Positions 15,681-60,729 are shown, counted from the stretch's first letter. The stretch is 64,000 nt of DNA from Macrostomum hystrix (GCA_950097015.1 CATNEN010000001.1:8556001-8620000); one strand, 5' to 3'. Notes: a model not told the origin generated them from the letters alone. A program made the numbers and translations.

Positions 15681-16385
15681 AAAGGTTGGCATGGTTGCAC
15701 TACTAAAATAAATGGTAGACAGGGCAGCACACAGCAAGAATTAAAGGTTGGCATGGTTGCACTACTAAAATAAATGGTAGGCAGGGCAGCACACAGCAAG
15801 AATTAAAGGTTGGCATGGTTGCACAACTAAAATAAATGGTAGGCAGGGCAGCACACAGCAAGAATTAAAGGTTGGCATGGTTGCACTACTAAAATAAATG
15901 GTAGGCAGGGCAGCACACAGCAAGAATTAAAGGTTGGCATGGTTGCACTACTAAAATAAATGGTAGACAGGGCAGCAAACAGCAAGAATTAAAGGTTGGC
16001 ATGGTTGCACAACTAAAATAAATGGTAGGCAGGGGAGCACACAGCAAGAATTAAAGGTTGGCATGGTTGCACTACTAAAATAAATGGTAGACAGGGCAGC
16101 AAACAGCAAGAATTAAAGGTTGGCATGGTTGCACTACTAAAATAAATGGTAGGCAGGGGAGCACACAGCAAGAATTAAAGGTTGGCATGGTTGCACTACT
16201 AAAATAAATGGTAGGCAGGGCAGCACACAGCAAGAATTAAAGGTTGGCATGGTTGCACTACTAAAATAAATGGTAGGCAGGGCAGCAAACAGCAAGAATT
16301 AAAGGTTGGCATGGTTGCACTACTAAAATAAATGGTAGGCAGGGCAGCACACAGCAAGAAATAAAGCTAGGCATGGTTGCACTAC
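15681..16385. repeat. 62-bp tandem repeat, about 11 copies
   Basis: Unit AAAGGTTGGCATGGTTGCACTACTAAAATAAATGGTAGGCAGGGCAGCACACAGCAAGAATT. Confidence 0.95.
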
Positions 16386-25168: not shown

Positions 25169-26039
25169 CTAATGCTTGAGCTTCTGCCTAGCGATCAAAT
25201 TGATTGTCTAATTCTCTGCTTAATAATAATAATAATTGCAGGAGGGCTGCGGACAATTGCAAATCATTTGGTGATACTAGACAGGCAGCCAGCGATGATT
25301 CTACCCATTTCGCTGACTCCTGAGCACACACGCACACATATACTGTACCTAGGCATACGCTCACACAGGTGTGTACATCTGCCCTGACTTTCTCATCGTC
25401 AGGAGGTAGTCTCTTAAGGGCGTAAATTGCACGACAAGCCCCCAAGCCTTCTCTCCGCGGCTGCGCCCCCAAATGAATGTGGCCCCGCCGCGGAACCGAG
25501 CTGCCTTAGGCTTTGGTTTGATTCGCTTCACATTTCAGTGCTAAATAATCTATTTCATTCCAAATTTGATGCACGGAAACTGTTCCATTTTGATTGATTT
25601 ACTGAAACTATCTGTTCATATTTTGAAATTATTCGCACTTCTTTCGCTACATTTCTGAGGTTTGATAGAAATGACACAGCATAAAACACCGTCATTGCTG
25701 CCCCCAGCTATCGGGCTAAAAGCTACCAATTGTAAATTTTTCTGTGGTGAGTAGGTGTTGTATATCATTTTTATAGAAAAACATTTATTCGTGTTTTGAT
25801 TCGAATCGCTATAATATAGTACCACATTTCATAGCTTTCTATATAATGTGCAAATCAATGCTGTCCCTGTTAATGAGGTAAAATAATTATGAGACTTATC
25901 TTTGCTTATACCAAATACACTGTACATTTGCCGGTGTATGCATACATACCATTGATTGACACGATTGTGACAATAAAAAACGGTGTTTATCAAATACCCT
26001 GTTTATGCAGATTAGGCCTGTTTATCAGTAAGATTTTAC

Positions 26040-39860: not shown

Positions 39861-42133
39861 TTACATATCCTCAGTGGACCATTTGTAGGCTTCCAGGCTA
39901 ACGGCTTTGCGTTGATTAACGGACTCGAAATAACGCTTTTCAAAGCCGGTGCTTCTATCGACGCCGTCCCAACGGTAGCCGGGCTCAATGTTGAACCGAT
40001 TTGGCGGACCAGGAGGACCATCATAGCGGGGCCGCTTTTGAGGCGGTGGAGGCGGCGGCGGCGGTGGTGACGCATGCGACGGAGATCGAGACGCCGAACG
40101 GCTATACCTGCCGGGCTTGCCGTCATCTCGATCCTTCTTATCCTTCTTTTTGCTCTTTTTCTCCTGCTTGGCCGCTTTTTTAGCCGCTTTCCGAGCCGCC
40201 TTCTCTGCCCGGCGTCGTTGCGTTTCGCGTAGAAACTCGGCCATCGGATCGTCAATGCGCGATTGTTCGCGAAGCATTGCGTCTAGATCGGCGTCGTCTC
40301 TGCTACGAGCCAACGGCTTCGCCGCCTCAATCTGAGCCTCGACGGCGCGCTGCTCTCGCTCAGCGGCTTGGGCTAAGCCTGAGCCCCAACGAGCGTACTG
40401 TGCCTTCAAGGCTTCGGATCGAGCTAGCTCTTCGGCCGTCGGCGGAGGCTTCTCGTTGGGGTTGCGCTTCGACGATCGTCTAGGATTTGGGAGCTTTTTA
40501 CGACGAACCGCTGACGCATACCTGGAAAAAGACATCAGTTTAGCCATGAACGCATGATCTAAAACATGAACATCCTAGGCTCGTATTATATTTCAGCAGC
40601 ATAATAAATACAAGTGTAGGATGAAACTCACCTTCCGAGCTTCTCATCGTCATCTTCATCTAACATCACTTCGCTGGGATGCGTCTGACCGGCTCGCCTG
40701 CGCAATCCTTGCGCCGCCTCGGCCCCTGTAGCATCGTCGCTGCCGCTGTCATTGTTGAAAGCGTCTTTAGCTTGGGAGCCGGCGCGCCTAGGTGGTGACA
40801 GATCGCCATCTTGAGATCTTCCGCCACGACGGGGAGGTGACAGATCGTCTTGAGATCTTCCGCCACGACGGGGAGGTGACAGATCGGTTTCTTGAGATCT
40901 ACCGTCACGACGCGGAGGTGACAGATCGGTTTCATGAGATCTTCCGCCACGACGGGGAGGTGACAGATCGGTTTCTTGAGATCTTCCACCACGACGGGGA
41001 GGTGACAGATCGGTTTCATGAGATCTTCCACCACGACGGGGAGATGACAGATCGTCTTGAGATCTTCCACCACGACGGGGAGATGACAGATCGTCTTGAG
41101 ATCTTCCGCCACGACGGGGAGGTGATATACGGTCTTGAGATCTACCGCCACGACGGGGAGGTGACAGATCCTCTTGGGATCTTCCACCACGACGGGGAGG
41201 TGACAGATCGTCTTGAGATCTTCCACCACGACGGGGAGGTGACAGATCCTCTTGGGATCTAGCGCCACGACGCGGAGGTGACAGAGCCTCTTGGGATCTA
41301 CCGCCACGACGCGGAGGTGACAGATCCTCTTGGGATCTACCGCCACGACGCGGAGGTGACAGATCCTCTTGGGATCTAGCGCCACGACGGGGAGGTGACT
41401 GATCGAGTAGGAATCTACCGCCACGACGCGGAGGTGACAGATCGTCTTGAGATCTTCCACCACGACGCGGTGACAGATCGTCTTGAGATTTTCCACCACG
41501 ACGGGGAGGTGACAGATCAGTGTCTTGGGATCTAATACCACGACGCGGAGGTGACAGATCAGTGTCTTGGGATCTAGCGCCACGACGCGGAGGTGACAGA
41601 TCAGTGTCTCGAGGTCTTAGACCTTGCCGAGGTGGAGATAAATCCGAGTCTGTGCTTTGAAGAGGTCTTCGCGCGGAATCAAGATCCCCATTCCTGTGCT
41701 CTCTGTTGAGTGGTGGAGGCAAATCTTTACCAGCTGCTCTTTGTTGACGTCGGGGCGGAGATACATCTCGCTTTGTGGACGACAGCTCGCTTTGTCCCGA
41801 CTGTGAGCCGCCGCCATCGTCATGACCGGTGACAGTCTGGAATGAGGACTTAAACAGCTTCTTGCGTGCGGCAGCGGATTCTGCCAACTGCTGCTTGGCA
41901 AGTGCCACAGCCGCCTCCTCGTCGTCGTCGTCGTCATCGAATTCTTGATCGAGTTCAGGTCGCTTGACGCCTCGCTTTTTTACTTTTTTGGACTTTTTCT
42001 TTTCGCTACCGCCGGCGATGGCATCGGATTCAATACGACGCTTTTTCTTCTTTGGCAGAGGGTCGGTGTAACGCTTGAGGTATTCGGCTAAGTTGCCGCT
42101 GTTGCCGCTGTCACCGCTGGGTGCCGAAGCCAT
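39861..42133 (-). CDS. BUD13: BUD13 (RES complex splicing factor); exons 42133-40632 and 40521-39861
   Basis: EYLKRY N-terminus, DLSPPRR repeats, DDPMAEF, NRFNIEPGYRWDGVDRSTGFE, AYKWSTEDM C-terminus. Confidence 0.95.
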
Positions 42134-44731
42134 TCTCCAAGTCAATATTCTTCTGGTTAGTTAAAAAGTTTGTTTCTATGCGAACAATTGGCACCTGTTG
42201 GGCGCGAAAAGCTGAAATGAAATTGGACAAAATGCTACAATTTAAATAATGAAAACCATAAATGTATTGAAACATGTACCTGCCATTAATCGTACTGCTA
42301 ATAATGCATACATCAGGTAAAGGGGGTCAGTTTCAGAGAGGGTCAACGCGCCAAGGCACACACCTGTGTGTGCTCAGAATTGTCTCTTCGTTGGCTGCTG
42401 GTCGACTGTCACCAAATGATGCCCCCTAGAAGTACAAATGAGTACGATGATAATAGTAATAGTTGCAGGGGGCAGCGGGAAATTGCACATCAATTGGTGA
42501 CACTAGACCCGCAGCCAGCGAGGAGGCAATTCTGCACATTTCTCTGACTCCTGAGCACACACGCACACAGATACTGTACGCAGGCACTTTCTCGTTGCCA
42601 GACAGTGTACACTTAACTGTGCCTTGGGGGTTTGGCCTTGAAATCAATTTGGCCTCGCAGCGGAATCGAGCTCAAGGATGTTAATGCTATCGTATAACAA
42701 AATAAATATAGAATGAAAATAACTAAAAAAACAAGACAGACACACGATATGATGGGCAAAACAGCTGATAGTACTGATCGAGTTTTTTAAAAGATTTATT
42801 GCAAGGAAAAAAAGATTCTGCCAAAAGTACAATCAAAGTACTATTAGTGTTCAATCATTTTATTCGAATAAAATTTTCACGTTTCAATGACGCGCTTACT
42901 GATAGACGACAAAGACTACCTAAACTGAGAGGTCAAGGGAAAAAGACTGTAGAGAAGGGTAAATACTTAACTACAAAACATTGACAAGGATGTCACTTTT
43001 TTACTTATTTTTCACGAAGGCTGAATGACAGCTAAAACGAATATAATATTAAAATGTGTCTTTAATGTGCTACTTGTTAGTTTAGCAGCATTGAAGCAAA
43101 GCTTAGGCGTTTAATTGATTTCATTAAATAAAAGGAAATAAACATAATTAACATAAATAAACATTGTTTTATAATTGCATAATTTTCGTTTAGATTACAC
43201 CGATAATATATGTTAAAACATGTTGCATAAAATCTCTTGGATATTCATTGTTCGTAGTACATCGATTTTTTAAGAAATTATCCATACGAGTATAAGCATT
43301 GATGATTATACTTATAAAAAGACAATATAAGTTTTAGAACATAAGTATACACCAGAAGAAAAGTTATAAACACCATGTTTTTTAATATATTTAAGTCTCG
43401 ATAAAAAACAGAAGTAAAGGTAGGATAATGACAAGGCGATTGTAAAATAAGTTTTATGATCACAATGATAAATGAACATGGCGCCTATGAAATAAACATT
43501 CATATACATATATGTTATTGCAGTATAATAAACTAATTATATGGTTTCGGATATATACCAGCTTTTGAAAAAATTGTATTGCACATCAAATAAAAAGTAA
43601 TAAATAAAAATATGACAAATTATTCATTATTAAAACTGTCTGAATAAACCACAAATATTAGGAGATACATAAGCTATTGCTATACTTCCAGTAGAGCGCA
43701 AAGCAGCAAATAAGGTCTGCTGAAAAAAATATATATATTGCGATTAAAATGATAAAATTTTTTTTACAAACTGTAAAACGATGTTTTTTCTTAAAAAGGC
43801 TGACAAATTATTTTCTAAAACAAAAAAAAAATAGACGCTTCATACCTCAGTTTGACCAGGTGTACACCAAGCCAAATGTACACCTAGTCAGATGTACATT
43901 TAGCCAGATGTACATCCGGCAAGATGTACACCCAGCAAGATGTACACCCAGCAATATTTACACACATCAAGATTATATACAGGTGACAGAAGTACACCTG
44001 GCTCTGACTCGAACTCGCGACCTCTCCGTGGGAAGTCTAAACCATCAAAAACGTATTCTTATAGAAGAACGTGCTCATAAAAAATGTGTAAATATTGATA
44101 AAGTGCAATTCAAAATCACAAAATAAACAATTAAGAGAATTATGTGCAAATTAAGGAACACAGAAGGTCGACACTGAGGTTAGAAAAAGTTAAAAGTGCA
44201 CAACCGACTCCTTCATTGACAATATTTTTAAACGAAATTCAACTGTGCAAAAAATAAAGTGCAAGAAAACGCTACATACTACTACGAAAAATTATCAAAC
44301 AAAATGAAAGATTGGCATGCAAAAATTATCGAGTAAAAACTGGTTCCATTAAATTCTAATGGCAATAGATGATACACACGATGCCTTGGGCCAGTATTGC
44401 TCAACAATGCGAAAAAATCTAATCTAATCAAAGCAAGCCAAAAATACAAAACAACAAACAGCGAAAAAACACAGCAAAACAATTCTAGACTAATGGTTAG
44501 TCGACTTTGTTCAGAACAAAGTAGAACAACATTGATTCGAAAAAAAATATATTTCTCAACCATCCGTGTTTTTTAATCTTCTATAATAGGTCTATTAGAC
44601 CTAAAATAACGAAAACGCTAATTAGGCTACTTAGAAATTTTTCGTTTTGCTTGTAAGTAGCATAATAAGCTTTTTTCGTTTTTTTATGCCGTATCACACT
44701 AAAAACGAAGCATTAGCTTTTTGTTCTCTTT

Positions 44732-45255
44732 TTAAACCACGTTGCCGCCACTTTTGCGCATCAGACGGGGCGGATGCGGCGGCGGCTGATCAGTGGCCGA
44801 GGACGACGATGAAGGTCCAGCAACTAGGCCCATGGCTTCTTCGTAGCGCGGCGGAAGGTCCTGATTATTGGTGGTGCCATTAGCCAGAAGCTCGTCAAGG
44901 CTGGGCTGGGAGGCTGGCACCGGAGGAGCCGGGCGCCTGGGACCGTGGCCGTGTCCGATGGGAACAACCGACGCGCCCGGACCATCAGCTAGACGTTCAG
45001 CGTGGAGCAGCATAGCCTCCTGCTGGCGGCGGTGGTGCTGTCGGGTTGGTCGCTGAGGCGACGCAGAGCCGTCCTCGCTGCTGCCGGAGCCGGTGCTGCC
45101 ACCGGGTGACAATTTCTTGCCCCGGCGACGATTGACGCGAATGGCAAAGATGGCGACAGCGATTAGGAGGGCCGAGGCGAGGGCGCCGACAAAGACGAAC
45201 ACGATTGGCTCCAGCCAGCGGCGCATTGAAGCCTCATAGGCCGAGGCGGCGATCT
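44732..45255 (-). CDS. MAM receptor constant last exon: TM helix and cytoplasmic tail
   Basis: Acceptor CCGCAG|AG, phase 1; IVFVFVGALASALLIAVAIFAI then RVNRRRGKK; LPPRY. Confidence 0.9.
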
Positions 45256-48200
45256 CTGCGGATTTTGAAAAAAAACGGAGTTGAAGCTTAGTGTACCAGA
45301 GGTCTTGAGTTCGAATCCTAGTCAAGGGAAAATTTAACCATCCGAGCAATACACACGTCTGCCCTGAATTTCTCACTGTGCCCAGGGGGCCAGGCCCCTA
45401 AAGTCTTCTATCGACGACTGTGTGCAAATGTAGCCTCGCAAATGTACATTCGAGCTTAGGAACCTTTGTACGAGAAACCGGACCGATAAGAAACTATATA
45501 TATTATTCTTTTTTTTACTCACGATGGCAAGGTCGATGATAAGCCGTGATATTGTCCACACAGATCCTGGCATTGGGATTGTTAGCCGGAATCGTACCCT
45601 CGAAGATCAGCTAGAGAAAAATTCGAATGAGAGGCACTTTCGTTAAAGCGAAACTTTTAAACAGTAGACGTTTTAAACTTCTGCTGTTTGGTGTAACAGA
45701 CGAAACCCTAAATTAATGTTTACCTTGAAATCTGAATAATCAATCAAATCAACAACAGCCTGTTGCCATTCGGCACTAAAGCCTAAATAGTTTTCATTTC
45801 TAGCCGAGTATTGATTTCGTTGCTGATTGTTGCTAGTCCATAAAGCCTTGTTTTGGCTGCATTGCGTTACGGGTGGTGATAAGTTATCTTTGTTACACAT
45901 GGTAATGCCGGTTGAGTAGAATGTCTCTTGTTATATTTTACACTTTTAAAGGCCTAACAATACTTAGCCTACAGTAGTGTGTTAATGATAGGCTTAAAAG
46001 TAAATCAATCTAACTATACTAAATTAGATTCAAATACTTAGAATAATGATCATAAACGCCAATCCTTTCAATGCGTTAAGGTCTAACAAAAACTTTTTGG
46101 GCAATAAAGTGTGTATCAGACTTTGAAGTAACAAAAATCAATCACCAGAAATACAATAAGTTAATCAAATATTGTTAAGATAATTTGTGCCAAGTTATTA
46201 GCCGTTAGCCGTGTTAGTTAATCAGTATGATTCCGTCTCAAGCATTAGCGCTTTGATTATCAAGTAAAAAAGTGCAACTTAAGCAAAACTTTGCCAGTAA
46301 AATTAGAAAAGCAATCGATAATTATTGATTGCTTTATTGGGAATAAATAATTTGTTAAGAAAGCTAGTTTATTGGACTCAACCGGCATTACCAGAAAACG
46401 CCAGAATTTTGTGTCTCGATGTCCACATTACGACGCTGACAGGAGCTAAAACGTGTAATTCAACATTGCTAGTGTCAACGCTTGTGCTTTCATCTGCCTG
46501 CCTAAACAATTGATATAAATATTTTTGGCAGCAAAGAGGATAAGAGAACCTTAAAGTCTGAGTCAGACTGAAGGTCAACAGTAATTGAAGACCAAGTTGT
46601 TAGTTCATCGAATGATTTGCGATTTGACTGCCACAAAGGACTATTTTGACAGAATATTCCACTACCACCGAGCTGCTTAGATTCAACATTGCGACATGAA
46701 CTGAAAATTGTCATTTATAGTACAGAGACAATAATAAACTGCCATCATTTAGCTTATTTATTGAGTTCTGGTGAATTTGGCAGCGAGAGTCAACAGCTAA
46801 ACACTAAAATAGCAGCGCTTAAATACCTTGAAATCTACAGCGGTCTCTATAGAAACATGAGCCTGGTTCCACAACGACTCCTTTTTTGAAGCAACAGACG
46901 CGGTCGACCAAATTTTGACATTATCACAGGTGACAGAAGTTTTCACCTGACCAGATTCACTACGCTCTGTCTGGTGGCACGATCTATCAGACATTTTTAT
47001 GTATAAAACATTTTTGTACAATTTCGTCTCCTTTAACTAAAACACCTAGTTCAACTGAGCTCATTGGCAGCAAGGATAAAACCATCGCTAAAAATGATAA
47101 TAAAAATAATAACAATTGCAGGAAGGCTGTGGGCAAAGGTACATCATTTGGTGACACTAGACCCGCAACCAGCCAGGACGCAATTCTGCTCATTTCGCTA
47201 ACTCATACATACACGCACACAGATACTGTACGCAGACACATACTCACACAGGTGTGTACATCTGCCCTGACTTTCTCATCGTTAGGCAGTGTATACTCCG
47301 CTCTGCCTTGGAGATTGGCCATCAAGGGCATAAATTGCACGACGAGTCCCCAAGCCTTCTCTCCGCGGCTGCGCCCCAAATAAATTTGGCCTCGCCGCGG
47401 AATCGAGGCGTAATCGAGCTTAGGGACATTGGTGCGAGAGGCAAACGCGTTAAAAGCTCTGCTACCGACCCTCATCGCTAAAAACGAACTTCTACCTTGA
47501 AATCAGCTGCTGAATCAACAGAAACCTGAACATTAGTCCATTGGTTTCTATCAGCTTCTGAGTAAGCCGTTTCAGCAGCAAGACTAGTCCAAATTTTGTC
47601 GCTGTGACAGAGCATAGCTGTTCGAGTCCTGCCACTGTTGTTAACATCAGATTGACTACACGAACTAGAAATCGTGAAATTCATCCGAGCTTGTAAAACT
47701 ACTATCATTAGCCTGGCAGAAATTAAAATACGAATTGCTTCAAAGAACCATCTTGACACCGGAGTTTGACTTGGATTTGAAAATTATAAATTTACCTTGA
47801 AATCGCTACCAGATTTAATCGGAATTGAAACTACACTCCATCTGAGTCTATCAGGATTAGACACGGTTAAACTATGACCAGATGCTGAGCTATTGGTTGA
47901 CCAAATCAGTTTGTTTTTGCACAAAACCGAAGTGAAAATTTCATTTCGTTCAATTTCATTGGCCTGTTGGCAAGATCTAAAATACGTTTGTAGCAAAACT
48001 TTTTGCTAAGAGGGCGAAACTAATTCTAAGAAAAAATCGGAGAATACTTCAAGGTGAGTTTTTCGGAGCTGAAGTGGTTCAATTTAAGATTTTTTGAAGA
48101 ATGTTTGTTATTACCTTAAAATCTCCATTTGATGTTAAATCGACATTGACAATGGACCAAATATTAGCATTGCTAACGGATGGCGCAGTATCCGCACTTG

Positions 48201-51200
48201 TCCACAATCTTTTGTTATCGCACAGAACAGATGTAAATACACCGTCTGGTTTAACGCGATTCGATTGCAGACACGAACTGAGTAAGTTGAGCAAAGTCAA
48301 TTTTTATTGAATGAGTCCTACGGATTACCGAGAATTAGTTAATTAAAGCAGCGAGGAATCCTTATGTCTCAAACCCGTCTAACCCTTTCTAGTAAATAAT
48401 TAAGTCTTTGTCATTCAACATTAAACTAACCTTAAAATCTTGCGAATGCTGAAGATTAATTTGCACTACACGCCAAGCTAAACTAGACAAGCTTGGGTGA
48501 TTTGTAGATTTCCAAACTACCTGGTTGCCGCAGGTGATAAAGTTGTACTCTAAGCCTTTAGTTTCTCGCTGGTTTTGGGTACAGGAACTAAAAATCCAAT
48601 TGAATCATAACTTGTAGAGAAAAAAATTATTTGAACCATTTTGGCAGCTTGGGGAAGACAAACCTAGTAGATGGAGTATTTTTAATTACCTTGAAATCTG
48701 ATTGAAGCTTAAATGTGATAGACACAGATACTAGCTGCCATTTAGAATTTACTAATATGCTGGCAGTGTCAGGTGAGCCTGTTGCTACCCAGACGCGTTC
48801 ATTCTTGCAAGTGTGAGCACTAATAAAACGACCGTTTTCCTGATCCTCAGAGGTTGAGCAAGACCTGATATTTTGAGCAATACAAAAAAGTTTTTTCCCT
48901 GGTTAATTTAAAATCAATTTTATGAATCGATATTTGGAGGAAGACTTCACTGACTTAGTGCCTTAGAAACTAATATTTTACCTTAAAATCGTTTTTCGAA
49001 GTTAGATCAACACTAACAGAAGACCAGTCATTTTTGGTTCCAATACGAACACCAGACTGTCCCATAGTCCATAGTTTTTTGTTGTCGCAAGTCACCGAGG
49101 TGAATAAACCATCTGATTTAACTTGATCAGATTGCAGACATGAGCTACGAAAATTATTTGAAACATTTTTGTTAAATTTTAAATTAAATGTTTTTGTAAG
49201 GCTTTTTGACAGCGGAGAATCGAATCAATGCTCCTTAAAATTTATGGAGACAGTATAAAAAATCACCTTGAAGTCTGGCGAATGCTGCAGACTAACTTGA
49301 ACACTGTGCCACCTTGCTGAGCCACCAGTTAAACTGTCCCGCTGATTATTATTCCAAACTACCTGATTACCGCAGGTAACAAAGTTGTAATTAAGGCCCT
49401 CATTTTGACGATGATCCTGCGTGCATGAGCTGCAATTGTACAATACGACCTAAATTCAGGTCTAAAGAACTGATGCACACGTTCCATTCCCTTGATATAT
49501 ATATATAATTGGCAGCAAGTGAAGCTTTGCATAAAGGTGCGTTCTTCATACCTTATAATCAGATCGATGTTTAAGATCTATAGAAACGGAACCCAACTGC
49601 CACTGTTGAACAGCTTGTCTTTGGCCAACCCAGATTCTTTCATTCTTGCACAGGTGGGCACTAATAAAGCGACCGTTTTCCTGATCCTCAGAAGTTGAAC
49701 ATGATCTAGTTTGTTAAAGAACAACGGTAGGCTTTGACATGACACACATTTCATTTTCAGAGGTCTCAAGGGAAGACTTCAAACGCATATTTAGGCTTCA
49801 ACCTAATGCGTGATAATAAAGTATACTGGAAAACACCCAAACCTTAAAATCAGTCCCAGATTCGAAGGTGACTTGCTGTACTATCCAAGATCCACTTTTA
49901 ATGGAATTAACAGCTGAAACTGAAGCAGATACTGCGTCATCTGAACGCCAGGCCACCTCATTGTGACAGGTGAAAGATTTGATTTCTTTACCCGATCGCT
50001 GACGCATCTTAGTGTTTTCTTGACTACAAGATCTGATAATTATAATTTATGGGTTAATTGTGCTTAAAACTAGGCAAACTTTTCTAAAAATTGACACGAA
50101 GAGCTTCAAGGTTTTCCTATTCGTTTCAAAATTTGTAGTTTCTAAAGACCGACCTTAAAATCTGAGTTGGATTCCAAATCCAGATACTGCTGCAACCAAG
50201 AATCAGGCCGAATTGCACTATTGTCAGTGTCAGGCAATTGAGTGCGCCAGACAATTTCATTGTGACACAGCAGAGACTTGAACTGTTTGCCAGTTTGATG
50301 ACTTAAACTGTTGTTCTCTTGACTGCACGATCTAACATTTTTAAGACATAGTCTTTATAGAATATCGAATTCAAACAGGCCATACAACGGGACAAACTTC
50401 AAGGCCCCTTGTGTATTGAGTAGCTTACTAGAACAGAGTTTAATAATAAAATCCCTCCTTTGAAATTACCTTAAAATCTGAGCCAGTAGGCAAGCTAACA
50501 AAAGCGGAGTACCAAGAACCGACATTGACTCCTGTAGCTAGCATGGAATATTCCGATGTCCACACAACCCGATTATCACACAAAACTGATTTGAAATCGG
50601 CACCCAGTTCATTGCGAACTTTCTGGGTGCAGGAGCTAGGTCAGAAGAAAAAAATAATTTTAGGCAATCATACTCGTATGTTTGCAAAAGAAATCTACGA
50701 AAGAACAATTAGGCTGGGAAGACTTCAGACAATCGATCTTTATTAACCTACGAGATTTACCTTAAAATCACGACCGGTAGCAATATCAACAGATACTGGA
50801 GTCCACTTTGGCTCCGCAGCTCCAACTGGGGACAAAGTTGCCTTCCATAATTTTAGATTCTCACTAGAATGTGTTGAAGTATTTGTAACCGAAAATGTTT
50901 GAATAACTGCTTTTAGTAGTATCATTATTATGAAGGTTGTAAATGATACGCTACATACCAATAGTGACCCGCAACCTCTTGACCAGCCCTCTGCTTTTCC
51001 ATAGAGACGCATGAACTGTTTGATATTTCAATAACAAAATCTGAAATTAACCTCCTTCATTCTGATAGAAATTAGCCATGATAAAATTTTCGTTCTTTGG
51101 CAGAAGGGAAGACCCACTAAGAAAAGTCGAAAGGAATAAATGAAACAAACTCTCTAAAAAAGTCTATGTTACCTTAAAATCTGAATTGTACTTCAAATCG

Positions 51201-54200
51201 ACTGAAACGATATTCCAAGAGCCATCAGCTTTGGCAGAGGATATCCAAACATCTTCATTGCGACACATGTGCACACTGAACGCTTTCTCTTTTGGCTTTG
51301 CCACTGTGCAGGATCTGGTTTTTACATTGTTATGTTAAAGAGCTTTTCTATGAAAAAAAGAAATGAGGATCTGTTGGTAGCGTAAATTTTCGAGCGTAAA
51401 TTTGACAGCAGGAACACTTGCCTTCGAAATTTAACTGCAAAAACTAAGTTAAGAAAACGAAATGCTACCTTGAAATCTGCAGCCTGTCGCAAATCAACAG
51501 AAACTGATTGCCAAATTTGAACGGTACCATCTAAATTCGAGCTAGACCACAGAACGTCACTTTCGCATAGGGATTTTCGTTTCTCGGCACCGGACGATTT
51601 AATGTTACTCGCCACAGTGCAAGACCTGTCGGAACATGTTTAAATCATAGTGCGCAAACTCCTGTTTTAATTTAATAATCCACGAGTTCAAGGTTTGGCC
51701 AGCGGAGAAGAATCGAGCAAGGGTGGTGACAAACCTTAAAATCTGTCTCAGATTCGATGCTAACAGACTGAGTAAGCCAACTGTTACTAAGGCCGGCATT
51801 GTCCTGCAAACTAGTCGAGCTCCATAATTCCCAGTTGTCACAATTTGAAGTGCGCAACTTCTTGTCGCCGTGCGTGATTGCTTTCAATTGCGAGCAAGAT
51901 CTGGGCGAATCGTTTCAAAATATTTCCCATTAAAAGATATTAAACTTCGGCGTAAGATTTTAACAGCGGGAACGCTTACCATTTTTGCACCAATTTCGTG
52001 ACGTACGTACTTAACTATTAAAACAAAACAATTACCTTAAAATCGGTTTCATCACTACCAATAGATATATGGATTGAATTCCAATTTAATGATTGACTAT
52101 AAGTTGAACGCCAAATTTCGACACTCTTGCATAAATGGGACATGACTTTCTGGCCATTGTTGGATAGTTCGGAGTCAGACACGCACGACCTAGAAAATAA
52201 TCCAGAAACTGTTTGTTGACCTGATATAATGAACGATGCAACTGATAATCTATCACAGAAGGAAGACTTCAATATAGGGCTATTCTATAGTGTGTTCTAA
52301 GGTTCTAATTGGCAGTTCTTACAACAGAGAACATGTAATTTATGCAGATATGTGACTGTGTGGTCCTATTTGTCTTAAGCGTCTATTTAAATTCTTAGTC
52401 CACTAGACTCACTTTAAAATCTGCCGCCGATGCCACACTAGCATAAACAGTTTTCCAATCGCTTGTACTACTGCTACTACTTAAAGTAGACGACAGGTCG
52501 GCATCTGAAGAACCGCCGCCAGATTTCCACAATGTGACACTTTTACACAGATGAGAGTTCACCTCTTGACCGTTCTCCAGCTTAGAACCCGACATGCATG
52601 ATCTTTGTTGTGTGGAAATAGAAGAGTTAAATAAACATTTTAATTGAAAAATCATTCCTCTTGTTATTATAAAATTAAGCAGTTGGGAAGAAAGGGCTCG
52701 GAAAGTGCTTGATACGCCATCTAGAATAAATAACTAAATGGATAGAAATAAACCCTTTGTTAATTAGATAATTATTTGGCATACTTGAATGGCAGATAAT
52801 GACTTTTTATCTTATATGCACCAGTTATTTCCACCAATACTCATTTTTATAAAATTCTGTTTTTATTGTTTTGCGCTCCGGTGCAAGGTACCTTGAAGTC
52901 TTCCCCGCTGCCAAATTTGAAAAATCAATGCTTTACTGTAAGTTATATATGTATAATACATCAAATTGCGATAAGCCAATGCACAAAGCAATACATCAAG
53001 TAAGAATACGTAAATAAACAATGAGCATCAGGAAAAATGTTTATTATTAACCATAAAGCTTTGAATCCTAAATACGAGTATTTCTTTCTACGAGCGTAAG
53101 AATTGAGCACATTCAAAAAGCACCTACCCACGCGATCGTTTCAGTAAGGTAAGACTAGACCCTCCGGTAATGTACATTGAGAAATCTAAGCACATTGAGG
53201 CAGCGGACATGCCGCTATCAACTTCTAAGTCGCGTGGGACAGCGGCAACCCAGCCTGGAAACCAAAGCTTCCCAGACAGGGCGGCCTGATTAGCCGGAAT
53301 ATGACTGCCAACTACAGGGAGCAGGCAGGCAGCGTCAGTTCGCATAGCAACCATCTTATTAGTTGCCATGGGAACCTCTATAGAGGTCCAACGCCAAGCA
53401 ACAAGATCGTTAGCTGGATCGTTGGCATAGTTGCACATCCGCTGGCTGGCAAAATCACAGTTGATATCAGTACAACTGACTGCATTTAAGAATATTTAAA
53501 GCGTTTTGTTAATGGAATATTAGATTGATCACGTAACCATATTGCAACGGCAAGGCTCGTTCTCCACATTGAGATTTTAATGTCGAAAATTGTAAAATAG
53601 ACTGAATAAGCCTACCCAAAAGAACGCTTCAACAAGGCCAAATGTACTCCAGGAGTTGCAGCCTCTCTAGATAGTAGTCTATAAGAGAACTGAAGGCACA
53701 TCTGTTCTGAAACATCCCGCCGACTCTCAGCTGTTCGTCTGACAATCCAGTTACTGAGAAAGATGCCAGTGTGTTGGCCGTTAGAACTGCCCAATACGGA
53801 GGCATCGTTTGGAATCATGCAATAGGCAGATGCGCCAGTTTTTGGATCGATAACGGACTTCCAATTGGCCGCCCTATTATAAGGATCGTCACTCCAGGCG
53901 CAAGACATTGGTGAATTCGATTTACACTCGATGGAGGATGCCGAATTGGTAGCTACAACTGAACAATCCATTGCATTTGAATACCATTTAAAATGAACTT
54001 TAAAAACTAAACTATTAAGATGGCTCGTTGCTCCATTTACTTCAGCGAAGAAAAACAATAATTGAAACTAACACCTAGACAATTTTGGGCCAGCTCTGCA
54101 GCTAGTGGAGCAGTCGCAGCTTTTGTACGACGTTTCTAAAGACTGCACAGCTGTTTAGTCCGTAACAAACAAGCTAATGCAAAAAGCATACCCAAATGAA

Positions 54201-57200
54201 CGCTTCAGCAAAGCCAATTGTAGGCCGGACAATCCTAGACTTGTGGGTGCAACAAATTTAAAAGCAAACTCGAGACACATGCTTTGCTGTTGCTGTTGTT
54301 GTTGTGATTGCCTAGCAGCAATCCAACCGCTAATGAAACTTCCTGAGTGGTCTCTAGCAGATGAAAACGCTGCCAAATTCGGAATCAAACAGTAGGAAGA
54401 AGAACGACTAGCTTGATCGATGGTTGCCTTCCAGTTGGCCGCTCGATTAAACGGATAATCACTCCAGGCGCACAGAACTGGGGAACTCGACGCGCAGCCA
54501 ATCATATTGGCAAAAAAGCCGACTAGATTTAAGTAAAAATATCAAAAGCAATTTAACGAAAAAACGCAAACAGGCAAAAATCGATCTAAGACTCGTTGCT
54601 CATAAACATGGGTATTTTTCAGGGTTTAATAATCGCTAACCTTACCCATGGGAACGCTTCAGCAATGCTAATTGCATTCCAGAAATTAAGGAGTCTTCCA
54701 TATTAGCGAATCTATAGACAAACTGGACACACATCTGCTGCGATTCTAGAGAATCTGAATCGTCTGCTTTAGTTATCCAATTGCTAAGAAAGCTACCAGT
54801 GCGAACTGGGGAATCGCCGGCAATTGATCTTGTCGGAATCAGACAATAGGACGATGAGGCCCTAAAGGCGTTAGGATCGATTGCCACCTTCCAATTGGCT
54901 GCTCGATTGAAAGGCGAATCACTCCAAGTGCAAAGTGTGGGCGAACTCGATGAACAATCGATTGACGCGGCTAAGCAACAAGCTTGAATAATTTGCAATA
55001 AACATTTTAAGACTTTTTAAACTATCATTTATCTTTAATCAATAAAATATTTTAAATTTAAGGCTCGTTGCTAACATAAAATTTTAGAAAACATACCCAA
55101 AAGTACGCTTCAACAAAGCCAGTTGCAACCCAGACGAAGCTTCTATTAGTGCATCTGGTGCAACAAACTTATAGATAAACTGTAGACACATCAGCTGCCG
55201 TTGTTCACTTTCCTCCGTTGATGTAATCCAACCGCTAAGAAAGCTACCAGAGTGAGCCTTGCCAGAAGAGCTAAGTGACGACGAAATTGAATGAGACAAT
55301 GCCCTGTTAGGAATAAGGCAGTAAGAAGACGAACGACTGTTAGGATCAATCGAGGCCTTCCAATTAGCGGCACGATTGAATTGACCGTCGCTCCAGGTGC
55401 AAAGAATTGGCGAGCTCGATGAGCAATCAATAGAGACACACTGACCAATCGCTATTTACGAATTAAAAAAATAAAAGTGCGTTGCTGAACCCTTACCATA
55501 ACAAAAACAATTACACAGAATTTTGGCAAGGCTCATTGACAAAGGTGAATCGAAGCGACAGATCGCGCAAATGTTAGCAACTAACTAGTAGCCTACCCAG
55601 AAACTCGCTTTAGTAGACTGAGCCTCGCAGCACTAGGGCTGCCAATGTCTGAAGAATCCTGAAGCCGATAAGAAAACTGGAGACACATTTGATCAACTGG
55701 TCGGCTATTATCAGAATCTGATGCGTCTTTAGCCATCCAAACGCTATGAAACTCTGCAACTAAGCCAGCTGCACTGCTACCGCTTGAAACTCGACGCTTA
55801 ATAGGCACGAGACAATAAGACGATGGGACAGATGGACTCGAGCTAGTCGGATCTAAAGTCATCTTCCAAGCGCCATCTTTTTTGTCAAGATCGTTTCGCC
55901 AGGTGCAACTAGTTGAGGCACTCGAATAACAGGCAAGACTATCATCGGATAAAAGTGTTGCTGAAGACAGTTCGTAGATGAAAACATGCTTTAAACAAAA
56001 AATAAATTAAAAAATTAGACTCGGCTCATTGCTCCAAACGCTATACAATTTTGTGATAGTTTTTTTACCCCCAATTTCGCTTCAGTAGACTGAGCGATCC
56101 TTCACGCGATGCGGCTAGATAGCTGAACGCAAGACACATACTAGCCGGTGAGTGCTCGGTGCCACCCGATGAGCCAGCTGTAATCCAATGACTTTCAAAG
56201 CGGCCAATTAAAAAGGATTGCTGCTGAGGTACACTTGGAATCAGACAGAGATGAGATCTGCTGGTTCCGATTGAATTTCTGTCGCCCGCGGCGTCAAGAG
56301 CGGACACCCAATGAGCGCCTTTATTGTCAAAGTCATCGCGCCAACTGCAATGCCCAGCAGAGCTGCATGCTAACTGATCTAGTGTTGCTTGGGTTGCAAA
56401 ACTTCCTGTTTTATGGTGCAGAATATAATCAATTCTTACTTAATTAAACTAGTTATTTTAAGTGAACACGAAAGAAACACGTTTTGGCAAAAGCTCGTTG
56501 CTCCTAAAATCCGGAAAACATTTCTTCGTACCCACGACTCCTTTTTAGCAAGCTCAATCCAACAGTGCCAACTTGATGGCCATCTAAACTCATGGATTGG
56601 TCGATGCGATAGGCAAAGCTAAGGCACATATCGCCAGAATTGGAGGACGATGGCACGTGTCTGCCAGTGAGCCACTGGCTAACAAATCGGGCAACAGCTG
56701 CAGGCCGATTGTTGCCAGACCCCGATCCGGGGCCAAGTTCCGGTACGAGACAACGCGGAGACTGAAAAGCAGCTGACGAATGCAACGAAGCTCGCCAATG
56801 AGCGTCGATGTTGTCCTGATCATCGCGCCATCTACACGGAGTGGCTGAGGCGCTGATACAGCTTAGCTCAGGTACAGGGATAGAAGCCAAACAATTTTCT
56901 AAAAAAATCATAAACAAACTGCCTTTTTTTGTGTGTAGCCTACTGGAAATAAGCGTTACAAAGGCTTCACAAGGCTCGTTGCGGTATTTTATAAACAGTC
57001 TACGTTCCATAAAATACGTAGGCGTCCCTGATCCCATACCCGAGACTACGCTTTAGAAGATTAAGTGTGGCTTGACCAGCAGTCCAGTAAGCGAACTGGA
57101 GACACATCTGGTAATTGTTAGGCGTATTGGAAGCGAGCACAGTTGGACTGACAAACTGGCCACTGGCATCAGCTCCAATAGTAGCTGCGAAAGCAGACTG

Positions 57201-60200
57201 AGGAACAAGGCACAATCCAGTGCTGCCACCAATGACCGAACTGACATCGGCCAGTGTCCAATGAAGGCGACTAAAAACATCATTTAGCCAGGCGCAGTGA
57301 CCACGAGCGGTGCACTGTAGATCGACTCTTGTTGCTGTAGAAACACAAAGAGATCAATTAATGCAACAATAAACAAGCGCGACGCTATTGGAAAAGGCTC
57401 GTTGCTTCCAGAGATCTACTAGCATACAGAGCAAACAGCAAACAAAAAGACAAGAAATTAGCAACTAAATTTCTACCCTCGATTTCTTCGGAGCAGCTGC
57501 AGGTCGACACCGGAAGACTGCTGCTCGCTAACTAGATATCGGAAGTGCAAACAACCAACGCTGGTGTCGGCAACAAAACGGCTAACAAAGCGCGCCTTTG
57601 TTGGAAGATTAATCGCCGATGGATCTCTGATTAAACAATAGTGCGTTTGGAAACGAGCATTTTCAGTCACGGTAGCCAGTTGCCAGTGTGAATCAGTGTT
57701 GTAACTATCGTCCAGCCAATAGCAGCGCGATTTACTCTCGCAGTGCAACTGCTTAATAGCCAGAGTATCGGACTCACAGTTCACTAAGCAAGTAGGAGTT
57801 AAAGGACAGATTTTATCAGGAATGTACAGCCAAAAGCTAAATGTAAACAAGCATTGCAAGGATTTGTTGCTCCATTCAATTCTGTACGCTAATTCATATT
57901 AGTAACGGATTTTTACCCAGAGTGACGCTTAAGCAGCTGCAGCGAAGGAGCATCGACATTGACAAGCCCCTCGGTGTCAGATGCCGAATGCGCAAGCTGA
58001 TAGCTAAACTGCAGACAAGCCGACTGAATTTGTTCGGCAAGAAATAGGCTAACAAAGCGAGCTGACACTGACAAAGGGATAACAATGCTCGGACTGTTTC
58101 TAACCATGCAGAATGCAGATCTGTGTAGAGCAGAATTAGGCAACGCTTGAACAGCAGCAAGTTTCCAATGGGCCTTTGTATTATAGCCATTATCATCGCT
58201 CCATAGACAAGTATCGACGCCGTCACTGTGACAATTCAACGCCTTGATGACCCGACTCGAATCGCCATTAATACTAGACAACTTAACTGCTAAAAGAAAG
58301 CCGATGTACTTTTTATCGTATTTCTTTCTTAATTATAATAAACTAAGTTTCTAACAAGGCTCGTTGCAGGAAGTTTCGATTTAAATAAAAAAACTGATTC
58401 TCCTTACCCAGAATTTCGTTTCAACAATTGCAGCTGACTATCCTGTCCTACGAGTTGATAGGCAAACTGCATACAACCCTGACTAATAGATCCGCTAGCA
58501 ATGAAGAGGCTAACGAAACGAGCCGACACTAGCGAACGGGCGCCACCGCCTGTGACAACTGCGCAATAGCTGCTGCGATAAGTGGTGGCAGCAGCGCTAC
58601 CACCAGTGTCCAATCGTGTTTCGGCAATGCTAGCTAGTTTCCAGTGTGCATCTGTATTATAGCCAATATCGTTGAACCAATTGCAAGATTGTGTGAGGCT
58701 ACTAGAGCTGCCGCCGCCACTGCTGCTGCTACATGACAACTGGCTAATGGCCGCTTGACCGTTCAGTGGCGAGGATTCTAGCCTAGCTGCAGATTTTTTC
58801 AATTTAATTTAATAAACCATTCTTCCCACGATTCTACTTTTTAGCGAAGGCTCGTTGCTACACTAAATCACAAGCCATATTACCTTTTTCTACTACATAA
58901 AACAAAGATTGATAAGCCAATTTTCTAACCCAGATGAGCGTCTTAGTAGAGCCAACATTGGACGATCGTCGGTAGAATCGGCGCCAATTTGAATGCCTCG
59001 ATCGACGCGGTAGCCAAATGACAAGCAGAGACCCAGACTGCGACCCGAGTTGCGAACCCAGTCGCTTAGCAACCGGCCAGAGATAGGAACGGAAGTTGCA
59101 GGAATCAAACCAGCTGTGCACCAACTGTTAGTGACAACTGACTTGGACTTTGATAATGAAGAAGCATCGCCATTGTGAATAGCGAAACGACGCCATTCCA
59201 ATTCACGATTGTAGCCATCGTTTGACCAGCGATCCGTTACTAATGACTCTTCAATTGCTGCTGGACCAGAGGCTGTCGCTGTGCACAGAGTTATATCAAG
59301 TTTAAGTACTTTTTTTCAGGAAATTTCGTTTTCATACGGCACTAAAAGAGGGCAGACTGACTCGCTGCTCCATTGTGCTAAGCGGAATATTACTGGAACA
59401 GTTGGGTTCCAACTATTTAAGCTTCGCTTGAGCCTCGGACTCCTGAGAGAGGGAGAGAGAGGTCTGAAGTTCGAGTCTTCGAAGCCAAAAAAGGAAACAA
59501 CTTGCGCCCTTGAGTGAGACACTTAATCAGCCCATCCAGATATAAAATTGGTACCAGTACCGGAATCAATATTCCACGGACTGTACAGCTGAACGTAGTA
59601 GTGTCTTTGAATGTGGCTGCGTATCACATAATCAAACTAAATAAAATTGATTCTTTGCAATGATAGCTGCAGGTGCTTACACAGGCACACGCTCACAGGG
59701 GTGTACATCTGACCCGACTTTCTCATGGTCAGGCAGTGCACACTCATTGCGGCTTGGCGGTTGGCCGCGGATTCGAACTCAGGAAGCTCAATCTAACTCA
59801 CCCGTGAGCACTTTTCAACAAAGCCAATTGCGGCCTGTCATCAGACAAATCAAGCTCATCCAATGGAACAAAGACTCGATAAACAAACGACAAACAGCGA
59901 GCATTGGCCTGACGATCGACTCCAGCCGTCCACCAGGGACTCTGCAGTCTAGCTGCCCCGCTGCCCTGCAGGCAGACAGCCTGAGTGGCGGCCTCAGTCA
60001 GGTGTCTGACCTGCCAGGAACTGCCAGGGCGCCAGGCCAAATCTACCCAGTTGCAGGCAATGGACGAGCTGTGAGACATCTGCTCAGAACTGGGCCGGTT
60101 CTCAAAATCACAGACGGCTGCGTGATTTAGTACCGAAGTTACCGCTAAACATGAAAAATACACCAAATTTCATTTACAATAAAAAAACTTTACAGACAGA

Positions 60201-60589
60201 AAAGTTAAATAACGCAATATTTTGGCTGCGAATTTTATTACTACATTACTAATCAGACACAAGAATAGACAATACGAAGGTAAATTAATTAGTTAATTAG
60301 TTAATTATTAGCATATTTATAGTGATTCTAGTTTAGTGCTAAATAGCACAATTTTGAGCCATAATCAGCTATTTATTGAACACTCTGCCCCATTCTAAAA
60401 TTACAATCAACAGTTTAAAACTTGGACGAATGGAGCAACGAGCCTTGCCAAAAAACTGCTAGTAAATTAAAAAATTTCAATAACTAACAACTGCGTAAAT
60501 AAAACTGAAAATTTCTTACCTGGGGCTCCGACTAGAAGAAGTAGAAAAAGCACCAAGGAGGCCGGGACCTTAAGCGACGAAGAAAACAT
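44732..60589 (-). CDS. Type I membrane protein with one MAM-like domain encoded by two mutually exclusive exon arrays (14 A x 20 B)
   Basis: Exon 1 (signal peptide) + one A + one B + 45610-45523 + 45255-44732 gives one open frame of roughly 400 aa with the MAM pattern CDFE..C.W...CLSF.Y...W...W....V......FKLIFEG...ICVDNI...PC, then a TM helix. Confidence 0.9.
45523..45610 (-). CDS. MAM receptor constant exon (domain C-terminus)
   Basis: TCTCTAG|CTG...CATC|GTGAGT; LIFEGTIPANNPNARICVDNITAYHRPCH; phase 0 in, phase 1 out. Confidence 0.9.
45724..46445 (-). CDS. Variable cassette B20, split in two (46445-46392 + 45856-45724)
   Basis: SCQRRNVDIETQNSGVF-C-QNKALW...DYSDFK; internal intron TG|GTAATG...TGCAG|C. 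Confidence 0.75.
46550..46700 (-). CDS. Variable exon B19
   Basis: AG|N SCRNVESK...GIFCQNSPLW...SDFK|GT. Confidence 0.85.
46827..46983 (-). CDS. Variable exon B18
   Basis: AG|N SCHQTERS...VTCDNVKIW...VDFK|GT. Confidence 0.85.
47496..47664 (-). CDS. Variable exon B17
   Basis: AG|N SCSQSDVN...LCHSDKIW...ADFK|GT. Confidence 0.85.
47796..47976 (-). CDS. Variable exon B16
   Basis: AG|N SCQQANEI...LCKNKLIW...SDFK|GT. Confidence 0.85.
48115..48277 (-). CDS. Variable exon B15
   Basis: AG|N SCLQSNRV...LCDNKRLW...GDFK|GT. Confidence 0.85.
48431..48587 (-). CDS. Variable exon B14
   Basis: AG|N SCTQNQRE...TCGNQVVW...QDFK|GT (below the ORF-track threshold). Confidence 0.85.
48690..48864 (-). CDS. Variable exon B13
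   Basis: AG|N SCSTSEDQ...TCKNERVW...SDFK|GT. Confidence 0.85.
48982..49144 (-). CDS. Variable exon B12
   Basis: AG|N SCLQSDQV...TCDNKKLW...NDFK|GT. Confidence 0.85.
49267..49429 (-). CDS. Variable exon B11
   Basis: AG|N SCTQDHRQ...TCGNQVVW...PDFK|GT. Confidence 0.85.
49552..49705 (-). CDS. Variable exon B10
   Basis: AG|N SCSTSEDQ...LCKNERIW...SDYK|GT. Confidence 0.85.
49843..50032 (-). CDS. Variable exon B9
   Basis: AG|N SCSQENTK...TCHNEVAW...TDFK|GT. Confidence 0.85.
50154..50331 (-). CDS. Variable exon B8
   Basis: AG|N SCSQENNS...LCHNEIVW...SDFK|GT. Confidence 0.85.
50470..50635 (-). CDS. Variable exon B7
   Basis: AG|N SCTQKVRN...LCDNRVVW...SDFK|GT. Confidence 0.85.
50761..51015 (-). 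CDS. Variable cassette B6, split in two (51015-50959 + 50863-50761)
   Basis: SCVSMEKQRAGQEVAGHY-C-ENLKLW...RDFK; internal 95-nt intron TG|GTATGT...TTCTAG|T. Confidence 0.8.
51173..51314 (-). CDS. Variable exon B5
   Basis: AG|N SCTVAKPK...MCRNEDVW...SDFK|GT. Confidence 0.85.
51469..51625 (-). CDS. Variable exon B4
   Basis: AG|N SCTVASNI...LCESDVLW...ADFK|GT. Confidence 0.85.
51735..51900 (-). CDS. Variable exon B3
   Basis: AG|N SCSQLKAI...NCDNWELW...TDFK|GT. Confidence 0.85.
52036..52189 (-). CDS. Variable exon B2
   Basis: AG|N SCVSDSEL...LCKSVEIW...TDFK|GT. Confidence 0.85.
52413..52602 (-). CDS. Variable exon B1
   Basis: AG|N SCMSGSKL...LCKSVTLW...ADFK|GT. Confidence 0.85.
52891..52916 (-). 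promoter_or_regulatory. Docking site for cluster B (RNA AUUUGGCAGCGGGGAAGACUUCAAGG)
   Basis: Single copy, reverse-complementary to the motif found upstream of the B exons. Confidence 0.85.
53128..53479 (-). CDS. Variable exon A14
   Basis: SCTDINCDFASQRMCNY...MCLDFSM...LLKRSR GG|GT. Confidence 0.85.
53616..53958 (-). CDS. Variable exon A13
   Basis: IECKSNSPMSCAWSDD...MCLQFSY...LLKRSF GG|GT; alternative in-frame acceptor at 53952. Confidence 0.85.
54192..54522 (-). CDS. Variable exon A12
   Basis: IGCASSSPVLCAWSD...MCLEFAF...LLKRSF GG|GT. Confidence 0.85.
54646..54970 (-). CDS. Variable exon A11
   Basis: IDCSSSSPTLCTWSD...MCVQFVY...LLKRSH GG|GT. Confidence 0.85.
55097..55451 (-). CDS. Variable exon A10
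   Basis: IDCSSSSPILCTWSD...MCLQFIY...LLKRTF GG|GT. Confidence 0.85.
55597..55960 (-). CDS. Variable exon A9
   Basis: LACYSSASTSCTWRND...MCLQFSY...LLKRVS GG|GT. Confidence 0.85.
56069..56405 (-). CDS. Variable exon A8
   Basis: LACSSAGHCSWRDD...MCLAFSY...LLKRNW GG|GT. Confidence 0.85.
56532..56898 (-). CDS. Variable exon A7
   Basis: LSCISASATPCRWRDD...MCLSFAY...LLKRSR GG|GT. Confidence 0.85.
57040..57334 (-). CDS. Variable exon A6
   Basis: LQCTARGHCAWLND...MCLQFAY...LLKRSL GG|GT. Confidence 0.85.
57477..57783 (-). CDS. Variable exon A5
   Basis: LHCESKSRCYWLDD...GCLHFRY...LLRRNR GG|GT. Confidence 0.85.
57917..58289 (-). CDS. Variable exon A4
   Basis: LNCHSDGVDTCLWSDD...ACLQFSY...LLKRHS GG|GT; TAGCAG tandem acceptor (58289 or 58286). 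Confidence 0.85.
58408..58786 (-). CDS. Variable exon A3
   Basis: LSC...SCNWFND...GCMQFAY...LLKRNS GG|GT. Confidence 0.85.
58930..59278 (-). CDS. Variable exon A2
   Basis: DRWSNDGYNRELEW...LCLSFGY...LLRRSS GG|GT. Confidence 0.8.
59802..60144 (-). CDS. Variable exon A1
   Basis: VCDFE...ACNW...ARLQSPW...RCLSFVY...LLKSAH GG|GT; most canonical MAM start. Confidence 0.85.
60428..60454 (-). promoter_or_regulatory. Docking site for cluster A (RNA UUUUUGGCAAGGCUCGUUGCUCCAUUC)
   Basis: Single copy about 65-90 nt into intron 1, reverse-complementary to 13 selector motifs. Confidence 0.9.
60520..60589 (-). CDS. MAM receptor exon 1: signal peptide
   Basis: MFSSSLKVPASLVLFLLLLVGAP G|GTAAG, phase 1. 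Confidence 0.85.
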
Positions 60590-60729
60590 GATTAATTAAT
60601 TGATTTTTATATCAGACGATATAGTTTGAGTTTCTGCTCTTGTCTTGCTGTCGCTTTTGTGATGACGGCTGTTGCAGTTAGAGATTGCAGAGAAAAGCTG
60701 CGCTGCAAATAAATCAGGGGAATATTATG

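Follow-up and report, generated by a model that had tools for sequence, protein, structure and literature searches.

Candidate docking-site and selector pairing at an array of 20 alternative exons in a membrane-protein gene of the flatworm Macrostomum hystrix

Organisation of the locus

We analysed a window of 64,000 nucleotides (nt) from Macrostomum hystrix (GCA_950097015.1 CATNEN010000001.1:8556001-8620000), whose minus strand carries a gene composed, in this order, of an exon for a signal peptide, an array of 14 A cassettes, an array of 20 B cassettes and constant exons, which encode the last part of a probable MAM domain and, in the final coding exon, a membrane span with a tail. Our subject is the array of B cassettes and a short element in the intron that precedes it, which an earlier note on this stretch had proposed as a docking site for selector sequences lying upstream of the individual cassettes. 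Each of the 14 A cassettes ends in ...LLKR..G with a GG/gt donor (here and below a slash marks a splice or splice-like boundary), and their last bases run from 59802 to 53128. The B array spans 45724..52602 on the minus strand, with B1 at the 52602 end, and its cassettes follow the pattern ag/N TCN TGY ... GAY TTY AAG/gt, that is SC...C...W...W...DFK in the protein. The two arrays abut (53128 to 52602) with no constitutive exon in between, so that any A donor must bypass all later A cassettes in order to meet a B acceptor. The coordinates of all these features are collected in Table 1.

All 18 unsplit B cassettes have a length of 1 mod 3, and two consecutive B cassettes would therefore shift the frame; when the B cassettes are skipped altogether, GG joins CTGA to give GGC-TGA, a glycine followed by a stop. 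Part of the array is the product of recent duplication, since B10-B12 and B13-B15 form a repeated three-cassette block of about 850 nt, with exons 73-85% identical in the repeat blocks.

Cassette use in RNA and in a related protein

The RNA evidence consists of contigs from four public runs of one study, and these runs contain RNA because the contigs include spliced forms. One contig joins the A14 donor at 53128 straight to B7 at 50635 across a GT..AG intron, and the small intron within B6 was likewise confirmed by a contig. Eight further A-B pairs (A5-B6, A9-B6, A10-B5, A2-B11, A1-B12, A11-B12, A12-B1 and A10-B14) came from loose ends at B acceptors, assigned by their match to the last bases of the A cassettes. 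On the other side, the donors of B2, B4, B5, B6, B7, B8, B13 and B15 are all followed by one and the same sequence, mapped to 45610. Among the contig joints listed, with 7 loose ends outside the listing, nine are direct A-B junctions and none joins two B cassettes.

When the whole library was searched by HMMER with the C-terminal exon, one protein was returned, PAA93052.1 of Macrostomum lignano (P0001 in our set, 422 amino acids), which is 82% identical to the gene over the tail; a second homologue search with this exon, restricted to a length range into which the full-length protein does not fall, gave no match. After the signal peptide of P0001 come one A1-like and one B cassette, and then the constant exon, the membrane span and the tail. 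The B segment of this protein shares 68% identity with B3 and 23-42% with the remaining B cassettes; individual cassettes thus have one-to-one orthologues, and the array predates the split between the two species. Together, the RNA contigs and the M. lignano protein contain one A plus one B cassette per transcript.

The Pfam MAM profile (PF00629) matches PAA93052.1 with 32.3 bits against a cut-off of 26.4, but over profile positions 108-158 only, its last third, and the matching region corresponds to the end of the B cassette together with the constant exon. Pfam gave no hit, MAM included, when the exons of the window were searched one by one. In the protein atlas, the three clusters closest to an A cassette are MAM (0.89-0.90), which we take as a lead only. 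No Ig or FN3 domain was found by Pfam in the protein or in the exons, so that the resemblance to Dscam discussed below is one of splicing design and not of protein. A sequence search of the PDB returned nothing informative, and the AlphaFold single-sequence model of P0001 (predicted local distance difference test score, pLDDT, of 42) is too poor for testing the fold. The gene has no paralogue in the same genome by DNA or by protein, P0001 matching this locus only.

Complementarity between one intron element and the B introns

The element in question, hereafter dock B, lies in the intron between A14 and B1, 211 nt past the A14 donor, and reads auuuggcag/CGGGGAAGACUUCAAG/guacc on the RNA strand. 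Selectors were found by pairing it, with RNAduplex, with the intron upstream of each of the 20 B cassettes, and each result was expressed as a z-score against dinucleotide shuffles of that intron. A partner for this single element was present in 20/20 introns, as the earlier note had claimed, and 19 of the 20 computed sites overlap or abut the plus-strand positions it had given. Duplex energies range from -22.6 to -38.3 kcal/mol, with a mean of -28.3 kcal/mol vs -17.5 ± 1.1 for 150 shuffled docks (z = -10); the reversed dock gave a mean of -18.2 kcal/mol.

The same excess was seen intron by intron, with z-scores from -1.1 to -7.9 (mean -4.0) and every one of the 20 introns below its own shuffles. 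Exact Watson-Crick complements of 8-13 nt occur in 15 of the 20 introns, against a mean of 0.62 and a maximum of 3 in the shuffles, so that complementarity is enriched over shuffled intron sequence. Copies of dock B of at least 8 nt in the same sense, used as a control, were present in 0/20 introns. When a 34-nt pseudo-dock was slid along the region from 53330 to 52640, the minimum fell exactly at 52916 (-29.0 vs -14.4 ± 4.0 kcal/mol). In a motif count on the B introns, a kind of check that the earlier note had proposed, the number of 9-mers stayed within AT-rich noise, but the top non-simple motifs were all the dock complement. A count of ungapped pairs over 26 nt, with G·U allowed, gave a median of 18/26 vs about 17 in shuffles, a measure that is uninformative because the selectors cover halves of the dock and the introns are AT-rich.

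The selectors lie 26-82 nt from the acceptor in all 20 introns. The parts of the dock to which they pair differ from selector to selector but overlap, as is seen in the dock-usage profile of the duplexes and as had been suggested in the form of overlapping halves, and the dock positions GGCAGCGGGGAAG are engaged in 15-20 of the 20 duplexes. Since the selectors overlap on the same dock bases, only one of them can occupy dock B at once. The B17 match, which the earlier note had called weak, is indeed weak and has two candidate sites (Table 1).

Dock B ends in the same GACTTCAAG/gt as the cassettes, and cassette ends were for this reason tested as alternative partners of the selectors. The 20 real cassette 3' ends, taken as pseudo-docks in the same register, gave -12 to -19 kcal/mol, which equals background, and the dock-specific bases UUUGGCAGCGGGG explain the gap in energy between dock B and the cassette ends. 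The selectors paired no better with the end of their own or of the next cassette, and a self-masking model, where a selector hides the donor of its own or of a neighbouring cassette, was rejected because the energies stay at background. Scans of the last B intron and of the first part of the constant exon found no second dock, and other scans found no dock for the A-intron elements in the A14-B1 intron and no pairing element that links distant A donors to dock B.

A separate code for cluster A

Cluster A has a docking site of its own in intron 1, with the sequence uuuuuuggcaaggcucguugcucc. Dock A reaches -32.7 kcal/mol on the A introns and -17.9 on the B introns, and dock B reaches -28.3 kcal/mol on the B introns and -19.4 on the A introns. 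The cross-energies equal background, which bears out the proposal that the two clusters use largely orthogonal codes and that A selectors do not pair with dock B. Both docks do carry UUUGGCA, as had been pointed out. By our estimate the chance expectation of such sharing between two 30-nt docks is about 3%, which makes the common 7-mer suggestive at most of the shared protein site or common origin at which the earlier note had hinted, and in dock B the UUUGGCA also looks cassette-derived.

Conservation and substitution pattern of the selectors

Between the paralogues of the B10-B12 and B13-B15 block the introns are unalignable except at the selector, which each of them retains. Across the whole cluster, the best local alignment falls within both selectors in 76 of the 190 pairs of B introns vs about 20 expected. 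Changes from the perfect complement are asymmetric: cluster B selectors show 25 C>T changes (0.18 per C site) and 2 G>A changes (0.04 per G site; Fisher p = 0.010), and cluster A selectors show 12 C>T and 5 A>G vs 2 G>A and 0 T>C (p = 0.009). C>U and A>G are the transitions that preserve a G·U pair with the dock, whereas the other two break the pair. The duplexes are 3.4 kcal/mol more stable on the sense strand than the same duplexes on the opposite strand, in agreement with the wobble-preserving substitutions. The base skew of the introns amounts to a few percent and so cannot account for the five-fold asymmetry between C>T and G>A.

Cassette-like shape of the dock

Dock B can be read as a pseudo-exon of the form ag/16 nt/gt, set between an acceptor-like uuuggcag and a donor-like guaccu and ending in the cassette signature (...DFK), and the 16-nt piece is frame-compatible with a cassette (16 = 1 mod 3). 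In a search of both strands of the whole window, where we estimate about 0.5 matches by chance, the signature GAYTTYAARGT occurs only at 19 cassette ends and in the 3' half of dock B. The 5' half of the dock has a 13-nt exact match within the B4 exon (51521-51509; null sets 0/500 and 2/400) and a 12-nt match within the A12 exon (54379-54368; null 9/400), and the dock as a whole aligns colinearly with the end of B1. Judged by these resemblances, dock B probably derives from a first cassette that is now dead. Since the selectors reach across the junction inside it, they match the dock in its present form. Dock A may also be exon-derived, on weak evidence: it is similar to part of the coding sequence of A cassettes, the ARFVS region, with its best match in A7 (null 15/400).

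The copies of the dock 5' half in the A12 and B4 exons could compete weakly, as pseudo-docks, for B19 and similar selectors, or could be due to chance or ancestry. A perfect 12-nt palindrome, CAAGGTACCTTG, is found at 52884-52895, where it comprises the 3' end of the dock and the bases directly after it; folded back on itself, it could cover the pseudo-donor with a small local hairpin, and the downstream half of the palindrome resembles the start of a selector. The fold of the whole A14-B1 intron is of ordinary stability (z = 0.08), Rfam recognised no family over 44500-61000, and a metagenome scan for dock B returned none. The dock was also considered as a recursive-splicing site and rejected, since the junction between an A cassette and the dock rebuilds no donor and the A-B junctions are direct.

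Interpretation and alternative explanations

The explanation that we favour, with a probability of roughly 75%, is that a docking-site/selector system of competing RNA duplexes picks one of the 20 B exons in a single-copy Macrostomum gene for a membrane protein with one probable MAM domain. This reading is supported by the complementarity and its statistical excess, by the position of the selectors, by the strand-specific wobble signature, by the orthogonality of the two codes and by the use of one cassette at a time in RNA, and we infer that the pairing would drive the choice of B exon. One selector at a time would pair with dock B, in duplexes of -22 to -38 kcal/mol, to the exclusion of the others. 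By analogy with Dscam1 exon 6, the duplex would loop out the intervening cassettes and bring the chosen acceptor beside the upstream donor, and/or it would lift a general repression while the other cassettes remain silent. The frame rule could then serve as a backstop, by which mistakes such as skipping and doubling would be removed.

Several points weigh against this interpretation. The selectors of B17, B18 and B20 are weak by z-score; the low value for B18, -1.1, is explained by the length of its intron (512 nt) and by a dispersed repeat in it. All selectors go back to one ancestral unit that was duplicated in tandem, and their presence in all introns does not amount to 20 independent events. 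A single dock makes classical covariation impossible, and part of the asymmetry of substitutions could come from a C>T bias that transcription causes on the coding strand. Finally, the contigs cannot prove that double inclusion of B cassettes, or use of the 16-nt pseudo-exon, is absent.

Tandem duplication also opens the way to a neutral account, where inverted copies of the dock were carried along with the cassettes and now decay, as selectors that have no present role in splicing. The cassettes are clearly tandem-duplicated, including the recent block of three, so that each unit would have received a copy of one ancestral inverted repeat, in line with the duplication model (PMC6071210). We nevertheless regard such a relic as very unlikely, because the cassettes are mostly only 23-42% identical (as judged from the M. 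lignano B3 orthologue against the others) and their introns cannot be aligned, yet 15 of 20 keep complements of 8-13 nt. The selector is moreover the best-conserved island of the intron, its distance to the acceptor has been held even after the insertion of a repeat in the B18 intron, and its substitutions favour changes that preserve wobble pairs. Conservation near an acceptor could have another cause, namely that the intron element and the shared UUUGGCA are sites for splicing factors, complementarity to the dock being incidental. Proteins often bind intron motifs close to acceptors, both docks contain the 7-mer, and UGCCAAA is the end of many selectors in both clusters. Against this, the intron copies are complementary and not identical to the dock (the same-sense control), the selectors retain different halves of the 26 nt with no common core, C>U changes, with which a G·U pair is retained, are tolerated whereas G>A changes are not, and beyond the 7-mer the two clusters have different codes. 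We regard protein sites as very unlikely too.

Control through a decoy exon is an alternative that gives weight to the shape of the dock. On this account the selectors would mainly hide the splice sites of a 16-nt fossil cassette, whether real or decoy, or mask cassette donors, rather than bring the chosen exon near. The frame-compatible 16-nt form, the signature shared with cassette ends and the match to the B4 exon speak for such control, and the ACCUUGAAG part of the selectors covers the pseudo-donor. The 16-nt piece, however, was used by none of the contig joints listed, the A-B junctions are direct and the M. lignano protein lacks it; 16 nt plus a B cassette would break the frame, and pairing of selectors with their own or neighbouring cassette donors stays at background. 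We therefore judge decoy control unlikely.

Within the docking/selector interpretation, we hypothesise tentatively, and as a whole with considerable doubt, that the dock is a fossil first cassette, "B0", of which a 16-nt stub with acceptor, ...DFK end and donor is left, so that docks could be born from dead exons. Selector pairing could then both hide the decoy exon and hand the upstream donor to one of the 20 live cassettes; with the A code this would allow up to 280 MAM-based surface isoforms, a possible case of convergent hypervariable recognition outside arthropods.

Comparison with known systems

The docking site and selector sequences of Dscam1 exon 6 were reportedly described by Graveley in 2005, and the flatworm gene shares their main traits. 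There, as here, the dock lies in the intron ahead of a long series of homologous alternative exons in tandem, one selector stands upstream of each variable exon, all selectors compete for one dock and one exon is used per transcript; several clusters are present in one gene, each with a separate dock sequence (PMC6071210, PMC3535345, PMC8791459). The differences are also clear, since the host is a flatworm and not an arthropod, and the product is a membrane protein with a single probable MAM domain and not an Ig/FN3 receptor. In addition, the two flatworm clusters abut without a constitutive exon, dock B overlaps a 16-nt pseudo-exon that resembles a cassette end, and no hrp36-like repressor or locus control element was identified in the flatworm gene, which is known here from sequence and RNA contigs.

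With 14-3-3 zeta, Mhc, MRP1, srp and Dscam exon 4/9 the flatworm array would have in common that competing intron duplexes choose among tandem mutually exclusive exons (PMC4691838, PMC6071210), but it differs from these downstream-dock or bidirectional systems, since its dock lies upstream and no downstream dock was found. In the duplication model for competing structures, one arm of a stem is copied with the exon and the single partner arm stays outside (Ivanov and Pervouchine 2018, PMC6071210). The flatworm selector and exon have likewise been duplicated as a unit with the dock outside it; that the retained arm resembles the 3' end of a dead cassette is not specifically predicted by the model. 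In a search of the literature, docking/selector control of large exon arrays was described in arthropod genes and smaller cases of competing structures in mammals, and no docking/selector report was found for flatworms or for a MAM-domain gene.

An array of 20 exons beside one of 14, with codes that do not cross-react, suggests that this design evolved, or was kept, well outside arthropods and the Ig superfamily, and points to a combinatorial surface receptor with up to 280 forms. The cassette-like shape of the dock offers a concrete and testable idea for the origin of docks. Transgenesis has been reported in M. lignano, which would make dock deletion, dock swapping and compensatory mutants practical.

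Features of the window and minor observations

Table 1. Exons, predicted docking sites and predicted selectors of the gene, in window coordinates; energies are for duplexes with dock B and z-scores for dinucleotide shuffles of the same intron
Feature	Position	Strand	Energy (kcal/mol)	z	Remark
Exon 1	~60519-60588	-			signal peptide; ends in phase 1
Cluster A docking site	60427..60456	-			intron 1; stands out in its own scan
A14, last A cassette	53128..53438	-			donor 53128/53127; upstream exon limit approximate
Cluster B docking site	52891..52916	-			footprint across all duplexes 52887-52920
Selector B1	52671..52696	-	-25.4	-2.7	second 8-nt exact match 52774-52781
B1 cassette	52413-52602	-
Selector B2	52246..52281	-	-28.0	-4.1	12-nt exact core 52261-52272
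B2 cassette	52036-52189	-
Selector B3	51958..51992	-	-28.5	-3.5
B3 cassette	51735-51900	-
Selector B4	51687..51723	-	-34.5	-5.6
B4 cassette	51469-51625	-
Selector B5	51397..51431	-	-27.6	-4.3
B5 cassette	51173-51314	-
Selector B6	51089..51123	-	-32.0	-5.1
B6 cassette	50761-51015	-			internal intron 50864-50958
Selector B7	50706..50728	-	-25.7	-2.6	12-nt exact core
B7 cassette	50470-50635	-
Selector B8	50370..50409	-	-38.3	-7.9	strongest
B8 cassette	50154-50331	-
Selector B9	50086..50113	-	-27.4	-4.5
B9 cassette	49843-50032	-
Selector B10	49770..49788	-	-28.1	-2.8	13-nt exact core 49770-49782
B10 cassette	49552-49705	-
Selector B11	49508..49539	-	-27.5	-3.8
B11 cassette	49267-49429	-
Selector B12	49204..49235	-	-30.1	-5.6
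B12 cassette	48982-49144	-
Selector B13	48931..48955	-	-24.4	-3.3	11-nt exact core
B13 cassette	48690-48864	-
Selector B14	48639..48670	-	-34.6	-7.2
B14 cassette	48431-48587	-
Selector B15	48340..48376	-	-27.1	-4.7
B15 cassette	48115-48277	-
Selector B16 core	48036..48056	-	-26.9	-3.7	10-nt exact
B16 cassette	47796-47976	-
Selector B17	47739..47777	-	-22.7	-2.1	weak, ambiguous; alternative 47720-47745
B17 cassette	47496-47664	-
Selector B18	47060..47091	-	-27.0	-1.1	76 nt before acceptor, like other selectors
B18 cassette	46827-46983	-
Selector B19	46773..46805	-	-27.0	-3.1	12-nt exact core 46774-46785
B19 cassette	46550-46700	-
Selector B20	46523..46541	-	-22.6	-2.4	9-nt exact core
B20 cassette	45724-46445	-			split
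Constant exon (LIFEGT...RPCH, end of probable MAM domain)	45523..45610	-			joined to eight different B cassettes in RNA contigs

The dispersed repeat in the intron before B18 is about 300-370 nt long and is inserted upstream of the selector, at about 47100-47480. Copies with 76-83% identity lie at 6773-7075, 20049-20374, 23979-24146, 25221-25500, 38109-38407 and 42452-42670, and the long A1-A2 intron carries a fragment of it (59694-59745). At 60720-60900, immediately upstream of the first exon of the gene, lie short tandem repeats with units such as cccatcctactgagat. Further away, a tandem repeat at 15734-16305 has a period of 62 nt and at least ten copies, and a neighbouring open frame on the minus strand (40631-42160) contains about 25 tandem copies of a ...DLSPPRRGGRSQ... 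unit and would encode an arginine/serine-rich repeat protein.

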